A stretch of 18,194 nt of DNA from Ginkgo biloba (Eukaryota > Plantae > Ginkgophyta), in the NCBI GenBank assembly GCA_024626585.2, contig JANKJI020000002.1, forward strand, positions 149,062,703 to 149,080,896, given 5' to 3'. A program made the translations under genes and the position numbers. The notes under the pieces were generated by a model. It was not told the origin of the DNA. It searched no databases and saw only the letters and a program-made list of their open reading frames with translations. Positions 1,480 through 18,194 of the stretch are shown here, piece by piece. Numbering within the stretch: position 1 is the stretch's first letter; the number at the start of each line of letters is the position of its first letter.

Positions 1480-3290
1480 ACATAAATAATTTTCTCACCA
1501 GTGATGTTCAATAGAACCCTTTTTATTTTCTCTCCTTAATTTTATCCTTTGTACTAAGATTGTTAGTGCTGGTTGACATCAATTAAAAATTAATTATCTC
1601 CATTTATTCGTACAATTATTTCTTCATAATGGTTGGTAGTTCTCAAAGGCATTGTAACCTCATTTGACATTCTCCCATTTTTGTTGTGGCTAAATATTTT
1701 TTGCAGGCATAGATATTTTAGAAATATTTCTCTAACTTTATGACCTCCTCTCCTTTTAAATTTATGGAAAAAAAAAAAAATTGATTACAATGGTATATAT
1801 CCCATAAAGAAGAGGCCAACCTAGTAGAATCTACTACTTCTTCATTCTATAAAATGTTGAGAACTTTTATCTTTTTTTACTAGGCCAACTAAATATAATC
1901 ATATTTTGAAATAATTTGATTATCCATCTAGGAAGAAATAATTTTTCCTTCTGAGATAAGATTATTCAATTAAGAAATGCATTAAATAATTATACTCTCT
2001 AAATTGGACATCTGGTTCAAGATTTCTTGAGTCATATCTCTCTTAAAAAAAAATAGGCTTCATATTCTTCATGTTATGACCCTAAAAAATATTAGTTAGT
2101 ACTATGATGACTTATATTATTNNNNNNNNNNNNNNNNNNNNNNNNNNNNNNNNNNNNNNNNNNNNNNNNNNNNNNNNNNNNNNNNNNNNNNNNNNNNNNN
2201 NNNNNNNNNNNNNNNNNNNNNNNNNNNNNNNNNNNNNNNNNNNNNNNNNNNNNNNNNNNNNNNNNNNNNNNNNNNNNNTGAATGAACTTAAAGAATTCTT
2301 ATTTATGTAAATTTACAGAGAAAAATTTCTTGTACAATCCTCTTTCTATTGAATGCATGATAGAATCAATCAGTTCTACTATTATTAAAGAATTTAGAGA
2401 TAACCCAAAAGTCTTTAATATAATTTTGAGGGATATGTTTAGATCCCTTGATCAAGAATTTTCCCACAATATATCATCCACATTTAATTTAGGATTTTCA
2501 GGTATGGATGCTTTGACCTTAGTATCTCATTTTCTTGCATTAAACTTGAATGTTTTGTTTCTTATTGAAGTCTAAGGATGAAGATGTGCTGCTGCAACCA
2601 ATGTCCACTATCGATTTAATATCTCTACAAACCATGGATTTAGCATGGGTTCTTCCTAGGTTTCTTCTCCAACTATCACTTCCATGGATAGGGAATTCAT
2701 AGGAGGGATCTTGTTGTGTTAAACAAATATAGAACTAAGTGACTCTCTATTAGGCATAATTTTTCTTTTAAAGTGTGCTTCTCTTGAACTTTGAATTTTG
2801 GATGATTTGTGCTTCTTGGTGGTGGGCCTCTATTCTTCATGAATTGACTTCCTCTTTCTTCCTTTATTCATTTTATTAACATCACCTCCTTCCCCTATTC
2901 CTAAGATTTATCTAGGTCTTATCGTAATAAACTCAGATCCACATAATATCAACTTGACGATTTCAATGATCATGAACCTATTTTTTTCATTTGTTGATTC
3001 AAGAGGGGGAATTTTCTTCTAACATCCATCTATATCAGTGAATATGTCCTTATCTCCCTTATTATTATTCTATAGATATCCCTTCTCCTAAGAGAAACTA
3101 TAATCCTTAGTGGAATTAGACCTAGCAAAGTTGGTTTGAGAGTTGTGTTGCCCCTTCTCTTCCAAACCACACAATCATAGCCCACAAGAATTTTGAATGT
3201 GCCCTCTTGATGTGCCATCCTAACTAGGAGGGGGTTAGTAGATGGTTCTATGGAGTCAAGACTATTGGGGGCTATGACCAACGGGGATCA
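1480..3290 (-). mobile_element. Decayed repeat element (copy A) with a degenerate minus-strand coiled-coil-like ORF; probably a retrotransposon accessory region
   Basis: 2279-3030 aligns by eye with 16020-16880. The minus strand gives long codon-like runs broken by stops (e.g. RDMTQEILNQMSNLES...SKYDYI, SLNSLIIVELIDSIMHSIERG). Family not identified; boundaries approximate; spans an N gap. Confidence 0.5.
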
Positions 3291-7236: not shown

Positions 7237-7489
7237 GAAATCAAACACACATGTAATCTTCTCCTTCATGTATCTTAGTAGTACTATAATTATACATCGT
7301 TCTTGTAATTTAACTAGTGTCAATTATTTGTGATGGGTAGAACTAGTGTGACCCATTGTTTTAAAGATGAAGATATTTGTAGCCATATTATAACCAAGAA
7401 ATAAAAATAAATTACTCTGATTCATTAAAAGATGTTGGGAGAAATCTCGTAGGCGTAAACCTTTAAGGAAATCAAACACACACGTAATC
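7237..7489. repeat. 22-bp direct repeat pair in the TPS 3' region
   Basis: GAAATCAAACACACA(T/C)GTAATC at 7237-7258 and 7468-7489. Confidence 0.85.
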
Positions 7490-7506
7490 ACAGATATTAA
7501 TATTAA

Positions 7507-7806
7507 TTACATAGGGAGTGGTTGAATGAGAGTTTCTTTTATGTAGTCCTTGACCTCCTTTTTAGAAACGCCAAAGCCATCGCCATCTCTAAAAATGACC
7601 ATGGTGACCCTCGTCTCATCGAAGAGCATCTTTTTGCAAGGCAGTGGAACATTGTCATGAGGATTAAGAAATTGGCGCGTCAATTCCTTTATTGCAGGAT
7701 CCAGAATAGCATAGAGATGATTTAGAGCTTCCTCCTCTGTAGACCCGGGATGGTCTTTCATGTAACACTCGATGCTTGAAGCTAACTCTCCACGAGCCTT
7801 TTCAGC
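7507..7806 (-). CDS. TPS exon 10 ([20 protein letters not shown]...GDGFG...IQPLPM*)
   Basis: Acceptor TTGCAG|GCT; TAA stop at 7509-7507; typical conifer TPS C-terminus. Confidence 0.95.
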
Positions 7807-10359
7807 CTGCAAACATTAAACTCATGGGAATTGGAATTGGATTTGGAATTAATATTGAACACATTGGAATTGCAATTGGAATTAAAAGTAATGAAAAATT
7901 GAATCGTAGGGGGTAAAGAGGGTATGCCTGGAAAGTCTTGGTGTCGTCGCTTAACCTTGAAATAATGCAATTGAGCTCAATCAGCTTGTCCGGATGACCA
8001 GGAAGATCTACTTGCTGCAAAATGTTCTCAGGGAGAAGTTGGCCCATTAAAAACACTCCACTCAAAAGCAGCACGCGTTGACCTATGGAAGTTATTCCAT
8101 TCCTTATGTACTCTTCCAACGTCGGCACATGTTCTGCGGCCAGCCATTCTGCTTCTTCCATATAACCTCCCAGATAATCCTCCCACTGTCCACATACACA
8201 TACACATATCAGACGCAGATTAAAATGGTATGCACCTCCCATTGTATATTTTAACATTAATTACAATTCCAACATTAAACCAATTAATACTTACAGCCTC
8301 CCGGAAAAAGCCAAGCAATTCACGCCCTTGTGCTTTCTCCGACTCCCATGCCACTTCATGTACAATGTCATAGAAAACTTTGTAGCAAAGTTTCATATAA
8401 TCGGGAAGCGTTTCCACGAAAGACAGATCCCATCTGAAACCAAATATTTCAATTTTTAAAATTATATTAAATTAAATGTCCCCGCCATGCATCATATTGA
8501 ATTTCAATTTCATCCAATATTATTCAAACAAAACAAAATGTAGTCAAATCAAGCAAACTACACCTTCTCACAGCCTCTGTGAAGAGCTTAAGTTCGTCCA
8601 GAGTTCCGTAAGTGTCGTACATATCGTCCAGAACTGTTTGGAGGCATGCGACTTTTGTAAAGGCTAATCGGCATGCAGCATATTGAGGTTCAAACGTCCC
8701 CGCAGCGATCAAGAAGAAAAATTCCAGGGGCCTCTCACGAGCGAAGGTGAACTGAGGTAAACCCGAATCTTTGAACCATCTGTATGCATACGCAATATGA
8801 TACAACCAATTAGTATCACAATGAATGATTATTACTAATTTGAAATCAATTAACATTAATGCATGTATAGTTTGGCACCTTGTGACATTCTTCATCTCCT
8901 CCAAGAGATCAGAGTGTACAATGTTGAAGTCCAACTTTGCCAATTCTAAATATTTATCGTTATACACGCGAGGCATCCTGAAAACATATTAAATTAAAGC
9001 AAATAATTATGCAATGTAACACATTGGATTTATAAGCAAATTATAACTGTGCAATATATCAGTCTAGACATTGGTTAGAGAAACATGAAACAACTCATAG
9101 ATATCCTACGTACTTGTGAATGCTTTCCCCAAGCCAGGCATTGTCTGGTTGATATATTTGACAATATCTCTTTGCTTCGTATCGAGGCACTGTCTTTTGC
9201 CAAGGATTCTCCAATGCATACTTTATCTGATAATGAAAATGAATTAATTGTTGTTGTTAGAAACCATAAACTTTAATATTATAATTTCTTCTCTGGAGAT
9301 GAGTGATCACACACCTCTTGGCCAAGGTTTCGGTTGCTGTTCCAGTCGCTGATGCTGGTTAGAGCTCCTCTTAAATATTTAGTGGTGAAGATTCTGGCTT
9401 CATCCATAACATTCTCTCCCGGAAACGCAAGCTCAGAAGCTCTATATAGGCTCAGCATGCTTGTTATCTCTCTGTTTGCCTGACCGGGCGGACAAACAAA
9501 CTGTCCACTTTCGTCTTTGAAATTCTCGAAAACAACTGCAAAGATTGCTATTGATATTGATATTCAGAATTATTACCACAAATTCATAGACAATATCACT
9601 TTCGAACCAAGAAATATATACATATATATAATTGCTACTCAAGAAATCTGTACCCGGAGATACATTGTAGCGATGCAGTCGAAGTAGCCTAAACCCCAAA
9701 GCAGTGACCTCCAGATCTACGAGGGAATTGTCTTTGCCGCACCCAATTCCTCTTTCGTTCCAGTATCTACATATGCATATTCCATATTGATTTAATACCT
9801 ACTTGGTGTTTTAATTCCCTTTATCAATTGATAATATTGCAGTAAAACGTGATAATTAAGCAGTGCAAAAATTAATATGAGAAGGGAACTGACCTGTATA
9901 CGTAATCAAGCGCTTGCTTGATTTCCAATTGAAAGTGGCGATCGATTCCAAGGCGTTCAACAGTATCAACAACCAGAAGACGTTCAAGTAGATCGATAAG
10001 ATATCCATCTCCATCTCCATTATTGATTGCATTGAACATGCACTTAATCTCCCCAATCAGCTTCTCCGCACGTTCCCTGTAACAATGTTCCTGCACGCAT
10101 AGGCATAGGCATTTTGAATTAGGCCATGGAATCATCACTATACACATATATCTTCTCATCAGATTATTAATTAACGCTAGCTGACATGAAAATCCCCCAC
10201 ACCCACACCCACCCCATAAGGTGATTGGAGAGAATGTATAAAATCGAAACCCCAGACATTGGGATGGGGATTGGCCGTCCGTCGCACAATGGGGGCCGAG
10301 CCACAGCCTTGATTAATGGAATTGGAATTAGAGATTGCAGAAACAGAAATCTGAGCCAT
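7507..10359 (-). CDS. TPS: Gymnosperm class I terpene synthase, probable cytosolic sesquiterpene synthase, (E)-alpha-bisabolene synthase-like (TPS-d3) but lacking the gamma domain; 600 aa. complement(join(7507..7806,7928..8185,8295..8433,8564..8779,8879..8977,9114..9226,9315..9535,9654..9766,9894..10090,10213..10359))
   Basis: Manual splicing gives exons of 147,197,113,221,113,99,216,139,258,300 nt = 1803 nt, in frame with no internal stop. Introns are 122,127,118,88,136,99,130,109,121 nt: eight GT-AG and one GC-AG. Motifs: [11 protein letters not shown] (RRx8W, 10284-10252), [51 protein letters not shown] (RxR), DDMYD (8628-8614), [15 protein letters not shown] (DTE). Only 25 aa precede RR, so there is no plastid transit peptide. 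Family assignment rests on my recall of Abies grandis bisabolene synthase, not on a search. Confidence 0.95.
7928..8185 (-). CDS. TPS exon 9 ([14 protein letters not shown]...ITSIGQR...[10 protein letters not shown])
   Basis: Acceptor GGACAG|TGG; non-canonical donor CAG|GCATAC; phase 0. Confidence 0.9.
8295..8433 (-). CDS. TPS exon 8 ([14 protein letters not shown]...FFREA)
   Basis: Acceptor TTTCAG|A; donor GCT|GTAAGT; 139-nt exon typical of plant TPS genes. Confidence 0.95.
8564..8779 (-). CDS. TPS exon 7 (WFKDSGL...FARERPLEF...[23 protein letters not shown])
   Basis: Acceptor ATACAG|A; donor AG|GTGTAG; carries RxR and DDxxD. Confidence 0.95.
8879..8977 (-). CDS. TPS exon 6 ([18 protein letters not shown]...KNVT)
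   Basis: Acceptor TTTCAG|G; donor AG|GTGCCA; phase 2. Confidence 0.92.
9114..9226 (-). CDS. TPS exon 5 ([25 protein letters not shown]...ESIH)
   Basis: Acceptor TATCAG|ATA; donor AA|GTACGT; phase 2. Confidence 0.92.
9315..9535 (-). CDS. TPS exon 4 ([12 protein letters not shown]...[18 protein letters not shown]...NLGQE)
   Basis: Acceptor TTGCAG|TT; donor GAG|GTGTGT; phase 0. The supplied ORF track misses this exon's frame. Confidence 0.93.
9654..9766 (-). CDS. TPS exon 3 ([10 protein letters not shown]...[21 protein letters not shown])
   Basis: Acceptor ATGTAG|A; donor G|GTACAG; phase 1. DLEV sits where class II enzymes have DxDD. Confidence 0.93.
9894..10090 (-). CDS. TPS exon 2 ([11 protein letters not shown]...[16 protein letters not shown]...ALDYVYR); contains the gamma-domain deletion junction
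   Basis: Acceptor GTGCAG|GAA; donor AG|GTCAGT; phase 2. Confidence 0.93.
10213..10359 (-). CDS. TPS exon 1 (MAQISV...[11 protein letters not shown]...LQSPYG)
   Basis: ATG at 10359; 49 codons; donor GGG|GTGGGT at 10212, phase 0. In-frame alternative donors lie 6 and 12 nt further into the intron. Confidence 0.88.
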
Positions 10360-10454
10360 TGAATATACGTCTATAACCTGACAGCACGATTAATGCAATG
10401 GACAAATTATGTCTCAACTGATCAAACTTGTGAACAAAAGCACCGATCCAATTG

Positions 10455-10462
10455 TATATATA
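10455..10462 (-). promoter_or_regulatory. Candidate TATA box of the TPS gene
   Basis: CTATATATAC about 96 nt upstream of the ATG, preceded on the minus strand by a (CT)n pyrimidine tract. Confidence 0.6.
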
Positions 10463-10481
10463 GAGAGAGATACTGGTTACT

Positions 10482-10515
10482 CCCACATGTTCAAGACGCC
10501 CACCCACATGTTCAA
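10482..10515. promoter_or_regulatory. Duplicated 13-bp element CCCACATGTTCAA containing a CACATG E-box (bHLH/MYC-type site)
   Basis: Exact copies at 10482-10494 and 10503-10515, 20-50 nt upstream of the TATA box. Function is inferred. Confidence 0.45.
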
Positions 10516-10894
10516 TGACAAATTCAACAATCTACTTGTTACGCCCGCATTTCAGCATACGCCCACCAATTGAGAAATTCAATCTACCTAACACAAAATT
10601 GATTACATAAGACTACATCTGACTACATATGATATGATATCTATTCTATTATGGTCACTTTCTGGGTTTCATTCATCCGCTCACTTGGATTCAATTTACC
10701 AAAAAAATTCAAACGGTCATCGAAGACCGTAGACCGTAGTATGAGGCAACAATTTGGGCCGTTGCCGGAAGCGTGAATTTAAGGTCTCCCTTTGCATTTC
10801 GTTGCCGTTTTCAATATGAATATTGCAAAACGTTAAAAAGTTAATGGATGTCAACATCTATTATCATATGCCCATTATTAAACATTATTAGTTT

Positions 10895-14169: not shown

Positions 14170-15090
14170 TTCTAAATTTTAATGCTTATGAGAGTGAAGC
14201 AAGGTTGACATACTTGCTTGCTTGTTGGTTTGATATTGACACTTGGGGTACACTTAATTTTTTAACTAGATCTGATTAGGTGAAGGCCATTATGGGTTTT
14301 GAGTCTATGACTTAGCTCTGAATTTTAGATTATATGCTTGGAGCATTGGCAATGGTCATAATTTCTTTAATGGATAGAATTCTCAATTAAATGTATGGAT
14401 TCATATTAGAATTAGCCAAGGGCTCCAACATATCCCCCCTTTCGAATCCCAAAGGCATGCAACCCAATGGCTAGAGTTTGCACATTATGATGGAGTTGAC
14501 TTGATAAATAACTTATCTATTTTTTTAATGCTTTAGTGTTTGGAAAAGGGGATTTACTTCTACTCTATCAAGTTGGCTTGGTATATTAGATAACACTAAG
14601 TGCTTATACTACTAGCTAATAGAGCAAAGTGCAATGTGCATGTTGTATTTTATAGTGGAAGTGATGCTTTCAGAACCATGGGTATTTCTTGTAGATATGA
14701 GAACCTTTACAATCAAGGATTTAGAACTCAAACTATTGTGTTGAGCACTACATTATTCAATAATGGGTTGAGTTATGGAGTAAGGATTTTAGTGTTATCG
14801 TATCCTCTCATTCTACTCCACCGAAGGTGGTCTAAATGGAGGGAGTTATATTCATTAGTTGGTTAGTGTTGTTGGTTGTGTACATCTTTGTTCTCATTCT
14901 TTTGAGAAGTGATGGGGGTACAACTATATCTTATAGTAAATGTGTCCCCTTCATTCATCCTTTATGTGTATGACGTCAATCATAGAGGGATATAGGGCAT
15001 AGTATAAACTTATATTTTGAAGGTTCTTATTGGAGAAAGCTCTTTCTTATACACTTTATTTTATCTTCCTAACATGCATGGGGGTTTAGC
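14170..15090 (+). mobile_element. Possible highly degenerate L1/LINE ORF2 C-terminal (zf-RVT region) remnant
   Basis: Frame-broken fragments occur in the expected order: AWSIGNG, FTIK, LWSK..PPKV..FISWLVL, ESS..TLFYLP. They resemble plant L1 3' ORF2 motifs. Weak, by eye only. Confidence 0.3.
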
Positions 15091-15799: not shown

Positions 15800-16908
15800 T
15801 TACACTTCAATATCCTTTAATTTTGGTTATGGATCCCTAAATACCTTTTCTATATAACTACATAATTCATTAAACTCCTTAGTTAGGAAATAATCCAATT
15901 CACCTAAAAACTAAGAATAAACCTTAAGATAAGATGAATTCTTGTGGATTACGCTCTACATCGTATAAATAAGACCGCATTCTTGAAGGGAATAATCCAC
16001 CATCTCTTCTTCCACCTTTTGAATGAACTTAAAGAATGGTTGTTTATGTAAATTTGAAAAGTGAAGATACCTATAGAATCCACTTTTTCTAAATTTATGA
16101 TATAATTAATTGTTTCCACTAATATAAAATAAGTCAAAGACAACTCAAAATTATTTAATTTACTTTCAATGGATATGTGTTAATCCCTCAATTGGGAATT
16201 TTCCCAAAATAATTAATCCACATTTATTTTCAAATATTCAAATGAAACCTCATGAAATTTAATAGTTTTATGGACCAACAATTGACCCAAATATAATGAT
16301 ATCTACTAAAAACAAAATTATTACCTTTGATTTGGTAGTTTTAGGTCTAGATGAGTTGAAATTAATAGCTACTTTTCCTGAATCAAACTTGAATGTTGTG
16401 TGTTTCTTACTGAAGTATAAGGATGGAGATATGCCTACTACAACCAAAGTTGATTTTTAATTCAATAACTCTATAAACCATGGATTTTTCATGGGTTCTT
16501 ATTAGATTTATTATCAAACCATAACTCCCATGGATAGTGAAGTCATAGGANNNNNNNNNNGGGTCTTAGTGTATTAAATGAAATTAGAACTAGGTGATTT
16601 TGGGGTAGTCATAATTTTTATTTTAGAGATCGCTTCTCTTAATATTTGAATTTTATATGATTTGTTCTTCTTAGTGGAAGGAATCTCTTCTTAATGACTT
16701 GAATTCCTATTTCTTTATTTATTCAATTCATTTTTATCACCACCTTCCCCTATGCCTAATATTTGTCTAGGTCTTATCATAATAAACTTAGATCCACTTA
16801 ACATTGACTTGATTATTTCAATGACCACATACCCATTTTCTTTATTTATTGATTTAGGAGGTGTATCTTCCCTATCACCTCAAACCATATCATCGATTGG
16901 GTATTTAT
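15800..16908 (-). mobile_element. Decayed repeat element (copy B), same family and orientation as copy A
   Basis: Shared blocks with copy A: TGAATGAACTTAAAGAAT, TTTATGTAAATTT, GAATTTTCCCA, AAACCATGGATTT..CATGGGTTCTT, CTTCCCCTAT, TCTAGGTCTTATC.TAATAAACT.AGATCCAC. Confidence 0.6.
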
Positions 16909-17649: not shown

Positions 17650-18194
17650 AAACCAACATTATCGGTGTAATAGAGAGGGTAATTAGACGAATTATTAAAT
17701 AAGTATAATTTTATTTTTTTATAATTGATAGATCTACCACCTTCAAGATCAATTGATCATGATATATACTTGCTTTTAGAATCAACTCTTCCCAACCTTG
17801 TATTGTATCAAATGTCATTGGTGGATAGTGAAGATATCAAACAACAGATTCAAGATATTATAGACCAAGTATTTATCAAACCAAGTGTGCCATTGTGTGG
17901 ATATCCTATCATACTTATGATAAATAACTATTGAACTTTGATAATATGTGTCAACTTTAAGGGATTCAACAAAATCACCATTAAGAATAGATATCCTCTA
18001 TCAAGGATTGATGACCTATTACATCAACCACAAGGGCCCAAGTGATTTTCCAAGTTGGATCTAAAGTTTGGATATCATCAGATTTGGATAAAGGAGGAAC
18101 ATACCAAGAATACAATGTTTAAAACCAAATAAGGATTGCTAGAGTGGTTGATGATTCCATTTGGGCTCATAAATGTGTAGGCAATATTTATGAG
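17650..18194 (+). pseudogene. Degenerate Ty3/gypsy LTR-retrotransposon pol (reverse transcriptase N-terminal part), running off the window end
   Basis: One frame reads LPPSRSIDHDIYL...IKPSVPLCGYPIILM...ICVNFKGFNKITIKNRYPLSRIDDLL...FSKLDLKFGYHQIWI...TMFKTK*GLLEWLMIPFGL, the canonical gypsy RT blocks. In-frame stops at 17932, 18043, 18130 and 18178. Left boundary approximate. Confidence 0.92.

Follow-up and report, generated by a model that had tools for sequence, protein, structure and literature searches.

The window analysed here is a stretch of 18,194 nucleotides (nt) from Ginkgo biloba (assembly GCA_024626585.2, contig JANKJI020000002.1, positions 149,062,703 to 149,080,896 of the forward strand). 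On its minus strand, from 10359 to 7507, lies a terpene synthase (TPS) gene of 10 exons whose 1,803 coding nt specify 600 amino acids (aa) plus a stop codon, with no stop inside the frame. The protein has beta and alpha domains only, and we consider it likely that it is a functional class I sesquiterpene synthase of the Ginkgo BIS3/Gb_24809 group that arose by an independent loss of the gamma domain. Homology searches were run exon by exon, the joined model being used only in local scripts; for the homologue search, the Pfam analysis and structure prediction, deposited BIS3 (P0196), which is 99% identical, took its place. The best solved relative in the exon searches was always the Abies grandis alpha-bisabolene synthase 3SAE (exon 7, E = 5e-39; exon 9, E = 4e-32). 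Pfam domains PF01397 and PF03936 were both present (searched with the BIS3 proxy and with exon 2), as in plant class I terpene synthases, and both metal-binding motifs, DDMYD at 348 and DDTKTFQAE at 495, occur in the 600-aa protein, while a motif scan of the same protein returned no DxDD class II motif.

Exon 1 (10213-10359, aa 1-49) starts with ATG and places 25 residues before the RRx8W motif (aa 26-36); judged by N-terminal length only, there is no evident plastid transit peptide and the protein is probably cytosolic. Exon 2 (9894-10090, aa 50-115) is a fusion exon in which the N-terminal beta helix is joined straight to the post-gamma beta helix. The beta domain continues through exon 3 (9654-9766; without DxDD) and exon 4 (9315-9535); exon 5 (9114-9226) is followed by exon 6 (8879-8977), which encodes the beta/alpha linker helix. 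The alpha domain occupies exon 7 (8564-8779; RER at 311-313, DDMYD at 348-352), exon 8 (8295-8433) and exon 9 (7928-8185), the last carrying the DDTKTFQ part of the NSE/DTE-type motif DDTKTFQAE (495-503), and exon 10 (7507-7806) runs to the stop codon. RNA contigs cover a 3' untranslated region (7415-7506), and RNA coverage of the 5' region (10360-10574) includes many polyA reads starting near 10399 and one contig extending to 10574. The nine introns measure 88-136 nt each; eight are GT-AG, and intron 9 (7807-7927) is a non-canonical, RNA-confirmed GC-AG intron, whose donor, CAG|GCATAC, fits the consensus weakly although three RNA runs show the intron to be removed efficiently. Exon 4 has a further, minor 3' acceptor at 9547, 12 nt upstream of 9535, which adds 4 aa and was used in approximately 6 of 34 junction reads in run X24; this longer form is the one found in the BIS2, BIS3 and Gb_24809 records.

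Exon 2 holds the feature that sets this gene apart. It aligned to the Abies grandis enzyme (AgBIS, 3SAE) as two pieces, residues 51-79 and 294-329, which is the single gap that a sequence-only reading of the window had expected. The junction (10001-10018) consists of GGA-GAT codon repeats (G-D-G-D-G78) abutting Y79, so that the protein reads G-D-G(78)-Y(79)-L-I-D-L, and relative to the three-domain Ginkgo protein Gb_39995 it lacks N80-L294, a segment of 215 residues, together with one Asp of the repeat. No gamma motif of the SAYDTAW or QxxDGSW type was found in any frame of the 18-kb window, and no gamma remnant was recovered when the three-domain Ginkgo sister was searched against it by tblastn. 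The gamma domain of abietadiene synthase (AgAS) comprises residues 134-349 (PMC13604524), which map onto N80-Y295 of Gb_39995. On this alignment, the cut at N80-L294 agrees with the crystallographic gamma domain to within one residue, bearing out the proposal of the sequence-only reading that the domain was excised at its structural boundaries; selection for a product that can still fold would be expected to leave so exact a cut. A genomic fragment of a three-domain conifer gene (L002) has the N-terminal helix and SAYDTAW in one exon, and VPCxYP and the next helix in another; with this layout both breakpoints fall inside exons, and the event would therefore be an in-frame genomic deletion fusing two exons. 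Exon skipping and intron-intron recombination were ruled out as causes because both deletion ends are mid-exon. The junction of Gb_32501, another gamma-less Ginkgo sequence, is one residue shorter, with a slightly different contraction of the repeat. L002 and a second fragment, L001, the only two finds of a metagenome scan, are themselves conifer-type diterpene synthase pseudogene fragments in metagenome contigs, L002 containing two gene pieces in opposite orientation.

Whole or partial matches to the window stretch occurred in 20 runs from 12 studies. All nine splice joints, including the GC-AG intron, were shown by RNA contigs (X15, X16) and by polyA raw reads (X24), which establishes the intact 600-aa frame and the short introns described from the letters alone. 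The X16 contig spans exon 2 (9894-10089) with zero differences, and the RNA contigs listed no splice joint or loose end at the junction (10006/10003). RNA-supported introns and an unbroken exon 2 indicate that the absence of the gamma domain is an artefact of neither assembly nor splicing. The explanation that the genomic gene retains its gamma domain, which was lost to view by assembly collapse or by skipping at the RNA level, draws on the several N gaps in the window, the existence of close paralogues and the lack of a junction-spanning piece among the DNA-run contigs listed. However, there is no N inside the gene, the same junction recurs in RNA of three studies, in BIS3 as deposited in GenBank and in a pair of independent gene models, and mid-exon breakpoints argue against skipping, so that we regard this explanation as highly improbable. 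Contigs of DNA run X7 were 2-4% divergent in the intron regions at 8982-9103, 9231-9342 and 9494-9693, pointing to further paralogues in the genome.

Two kinds of close relative were found in Ginkgo. BIS3 (QFP98433.1, 604 aa) and Gb_24809 share the gamma-less junction and differ from the window protein at 5-7 residues (approximately 99% identity), and Gb_32501, also gamma-less, falls in the same cluster; the window allele is distinguished from BIS3 and Gb_24809 by Q45, P47 and S219 and by use of the main acceptor, without the 4-aa insert. The window gene and these three probably represent one locus or tandem duplicates. The adjoining cluster consists of Gb_39995 (817 aa) and BIS2 (QFP98432.1, 820 aa), both of which retain the 215-residue gamma domain. 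Compared with Gb_39995, the window protein shows 0/28 differences before the junction (residues 50-77), 21/187 across the beta domain and 1/335 across the alpha domain; the alpha part is identical to that of BIS2 (335/335). Scaling from AgBIS, approximately 23 alpha differences would be expected against the 1 observed (P ≈ 2 × 10−9), an excess similarity that implies gene conversion or recombination between the sisters. Because the alpha domains have been homogenised, the loss cannot be dated from them. The beta domain of Gb_39995 is 11% divergent from the window gene and that of AgBIS 35%, which suggests that the loss falls in the more recent part of the interval since the Ginkgo-conifer split. 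The database numbers of Gb_24809, Gb_39995 and Gb_32501 are P004092, P004093 and P004102, and this file order suggests that they are chromosomal neighbours, in keeping with the report that 68% of TPS-d genes sit in tandem arrays (PMC13626697). It is also worth noting that BIS2 (P0194) looks mosaic, with both ends BIS3-type and the gamma domain and next ~25 residues Gb_39995-type; it may be a real recombinant allele or a PCR or assembly chimera. The near-identical three-domain sister in the same species is the strongest feature and was not visible to the sequence-only reading.

To place the gene, alpha-domain and beta-domain trees were built under LG+G4, with no mixture model, from 69 chosen rows (fragments and near-duplicates excluded; sampling of cycads, Araucariaceae and Podocarpaceae was thin). 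In the alpha-domain tree the Ginkgo group (support 99/97) was sister to the conifer bisabolene and farnesene synthases (100/99), three-domain Cycas sequences and Gb_38829 branched outside the Ginkgo and conifer groups (98/93, 99/95), and ordinary gamma-less TPS-d enzymes formed a separate clade (98/92) apart from the window gene. The beta-domain tree gave the same placement among three-domain bisabolene and farnesene synthases, and the approximately unbiased (AU) test rejected a single gamma-less clade (alpha: P = 2 × 10−6; beta: P = 2 × 10−5). All remaining full-length clade members that were retrieved had three domains. The window gene is a variant and not a typical member: it shares the absence of DxDD, the presence of RRx8W and the short N-terminus, and departs from the gamma-beta-alpha architecture. 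Nesting among three-domain enzymes implies that the loss is later than the Ginkgo-conifer split. From domain phylogeny, the loss is thus placed as a separate, Ginkgo-lineage event, independent of the one behind the other gamma-less TPS-d. The sequence-only reading had put the loss inside the bisabolene synthase clade and apart from that of TPS-d1/d2, and had looked for an alpha-domain grouping with three-domain bisabolene synthases; trees, AU test and a differing junction all uphold it there. Two of its labels fell. It named the clade TPS-d3, whereas bisabolene synthases are placed in TPS-d2 (PMC13604524) and both trees put the window gene outside the LAS/LPS diterpene synthase group (TPS-d3), and its setting was a conifer one, whereas the gene is from Ginkgo.

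Alternatively, the gene might belong to the old gamma-less TPS-d lineage as an ordinary member, or might be a chimera that combines an N-terminal half from that lineage with a bisabolene synthase alpha domain. Like ordinary conifer enzymes for mono- and sesquiterpenes, it has nine introns (the number in TcTPS1/2) and ~600 aa, and exon 2 can be aligned over its whole length with Thuja sabinene synthase. That origin is contradicted by both trees, which nest the gene among three-domain enzymes, and by the AU test; residues 50-77 match Gb_39995 at 28/28 positions, and the Pinaceae TPS-d1 monoterpene synthase junction differs in keeping an ELMSP-type remnant and lacking the Tyr. Barring an unrecognised tree artefact, the trees refute an old gamma-less lineage, and we assign this origin a very small chance. 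A Cupressaceae orthologue of the Taiwania zingiberene synthases was also considered as the identity of the gene and dropped on the Ginkgo matches (TcTPS1/2 sequences were outside the comparison).

Two placements elsewhere in the trees deserve mention. The three-domain pseudolaratriene synthase PxaTPS8 (P0310) and its relative P0070 nested, in the alpha and beta trees alike, within the gamma-less monoterpene synthases of Pinaceae, suggesting either regain of the gamma domain by recombination or many separate losses; a review records the three domains of PxaTPS8 within TPS-d1, without explanation (PMC13604524). Three-domain taxadiene synthases grouped with or among gamma-less TPS-d (83/60 alpha, 99/98 beta) and not with LAS-type diterpene synthases.

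An AlphaFold model of BIS3 had a predicted local distance difference test score (pLDDT) of 87 and a predicted template modelling score (pTM) of 0.89; at the junction it places a short loop that links two helices. Its top Foldseek match was 3SAE (root-mean-square deviation of 2.2 Å over 530 columns), and against a beta-alpha sabinene synthase it showed near-full coverage with a template modelling (TM) score of 0.92-0.93 by target length; a single-sequence fold of Gb_39995 reached a pLDDT of 35, too low to be of use. Cavity-lining segments were identical to those of three (E)-alpha-bisabolene synthases at 82-83 of 97 positions (83/97 for AgBIS), to those of beta-farnesene and gamma-bisabolene synthases at 71-74/97, and to those of ordinary gamma-less TPS-d at 37-45/97. 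As the cavity identities suggest, the product from farnesyl diphosphate (FPP) would, with fair probability, be (E)-alpha-bisabolene. Gamma-less transcripts carried BIS3-, Gb_24809- and Gb_32501-type variants, so that transcription and correct splicing are seen for at least three gamma-less haplotypes. By rough figures, the gamma-less contig in X15 had a depth of 259 against 15 for a piece of three-domain type, and at codon 89 the three-domain variant appeared in 3/27 reads in X24, which suggests that the short form is the main transcript.

Should the loss be real and independent, the enzyme might still be crippled or altered in folding, activity or product mix, its intact look owed to gene conversion from the sister and not to selection. 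Engineered domain deletions of taxadiene synthase reportedly lower efficiency, and the homogenisation evident in the 1/335 alpha against 21/187 beta differences to Gb_39995 can mask relaxed selection. Against this stand the transcribed, correctly spliced gamma-less haplotypes, which outnumber three-domain-type reads, the 0-6/187 beta positions at which the gamma-less copies differ mutually, their frames open, and a BIS3 model that is predicted to fold as a normal beta-alpha enzyme; we therefore hold a crippled enzyme to be unlikely. A functional product of independent gamma loss accounts better for these observations, and the stronger form of it, a fully active and more strongly expressed two-domain bisabolene synthase beside a three-domain sister whose active site is the same, produced by a previously unremarked loss, is in our judgement an even call. 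Several points weigh against a functional product of independent loss. The alignment behind the AlphaFold model consisted of beta-alpha relatives only, biasing the fold, so the model would show compatibility and not proof. The characterised GbTPS1 and GbTPS2 (AIU94289/90) entered by their published description only, both being absent from the homologue and cluster results. No enzyme assay of a BIS3-group protein was found in the literature searched (subscription journals were outside the search). Finally, the window-specific codons Q45, P47 and S219 were nearly absent from RNA (at most 1/36 and 0/49 reads); the gene group is expressed, and the window haplotype is probably an allele absent from the sampled trees or else a quiet copy.

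Under the favored reading, of a functional enzyme left by independent loss, one copy of a duplicated Ginkgo bisabolene-type synthase with three domains (gamma-beta-alpha) would be the starting point. A genomic deletion that kept the frame and had both ends within exons, perhaps arising by break repair or by slippage close to the GGA-GAT repeats, would have removed the catalytically dead gamma domain with its introns and fused the halves of two exons into exon 2, and could have survived by leaving an intact beta-alpha fold behind. Gene conversion or recombination may later have homogenised the gamma-less and three-domain copies in their 3' halves. In the predicted chemistry, Mg2+ at DDMYD and DDTKTFQAE would ionise FPP, which would pass through nerolidyl diphosphate and C1-C6 closure to the bisabolyl cation and, by deprotonation, most likely to (E)-alpha-bisabolene.

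AgBIS/Ag1 (O81086, 3SAE), PaTPS-Bis and PxaTPS5 belong to the same clade, with alpha domains 78-79% identical to that of the window gene and RRx8W, DDMYD and the absence of DxDD in common; however, characterised clade members are all gamma-beta-alpha (PMC13604524), whereas the window gene is beta-alpha. A 2026 review classes bisabolene synthases as TPS-d2, gives Ag1, GbTPS1, GbTPS2, PaTPS-Bis, PmeTPS3/4 and PxaTPS5 as three-domain and all TPS-d3 as three-domain diterpene synthases, counts only three characterised Ginkgo TPS, and describes progressive gamma loss in d2/d1 without a Ginkgo-specific event (PMC13604524); TPS-d2 has likewise been defined as three-domain without class II activity (Jia 2022, PMC9169658). 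Gamma-less TPS-d1 monoterpene and TPS-d2 (longifolene, selinene and humulene) synthases share the beta-alpha build, ~600 aa and nine introns, but have just 44-50% alpha identity to the window gene, a separate clade and another junction. Independent gamma losses in TPS-e/f and TPS-c (Hillwig 2011, as cited in Jia 2022, PMC9169658) are like events, class II activity going first and gamma after, in different subfamilies. The supposition that relatives might already have been reported holds in part: the sequence is public as BIS3/Gb_24809, yet the literature searched contained no characterisation of BIS3, Gb_24809 or Gb_39995 and no remark on a missing domain, and mentioned Gb_32501 solely among differentially expressed genes. 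Events of this kind are known, and the sequence is public; the extra Ginkgo loss and the near-identical pair with and without gamma are the new points.

In evolutionary terms, three-domain bisabolene synthases are viewed as standing between diterpene synthases and the mono- and sesquiterpene synthases with two domains (PMC8232007), and the loss step has so far been inferred solely from enzymes ~45% identical. Here one species contains the state before and the state after, both on the same catalytic domain, so that what a dead gamma domain does to folding, stability, rate and product becomes measurable unconfounded. One early seed-plant gamma loss has been modelled for TPS-d1 and TPS-a/b/g (Jia 2022, PMC9169658), and a further independent loss within TPS-d runs contrary to a single-loss picture. 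If the pair proves active, the vestigial gamma domain would be directly shown to be dispensable, and a bisabolene synthase of 600 aa, natural and with its junction already selected, would be at hand. Such a compact bisabolene-type synthase could serve microbial bisabolene production, for which AgBIS is the usual enzyme. It was used for microbial bisabolene in PMC4126464.

Elsewhere in the window, short open reading frames at 17725-17934 (plus strand) and ~14600-14866 resemble by eye a decayed Ty3/gypsy reverse transcriptase start and an antisense integrase; no Pfam match was obtained for these short frames in the frames tested. A repeat of ~750 nt, present as two diverged copies (73-78% identity) at 2279-3005 and 16020-16860, flanks the gene at long range and probably consists of transposon remnants.

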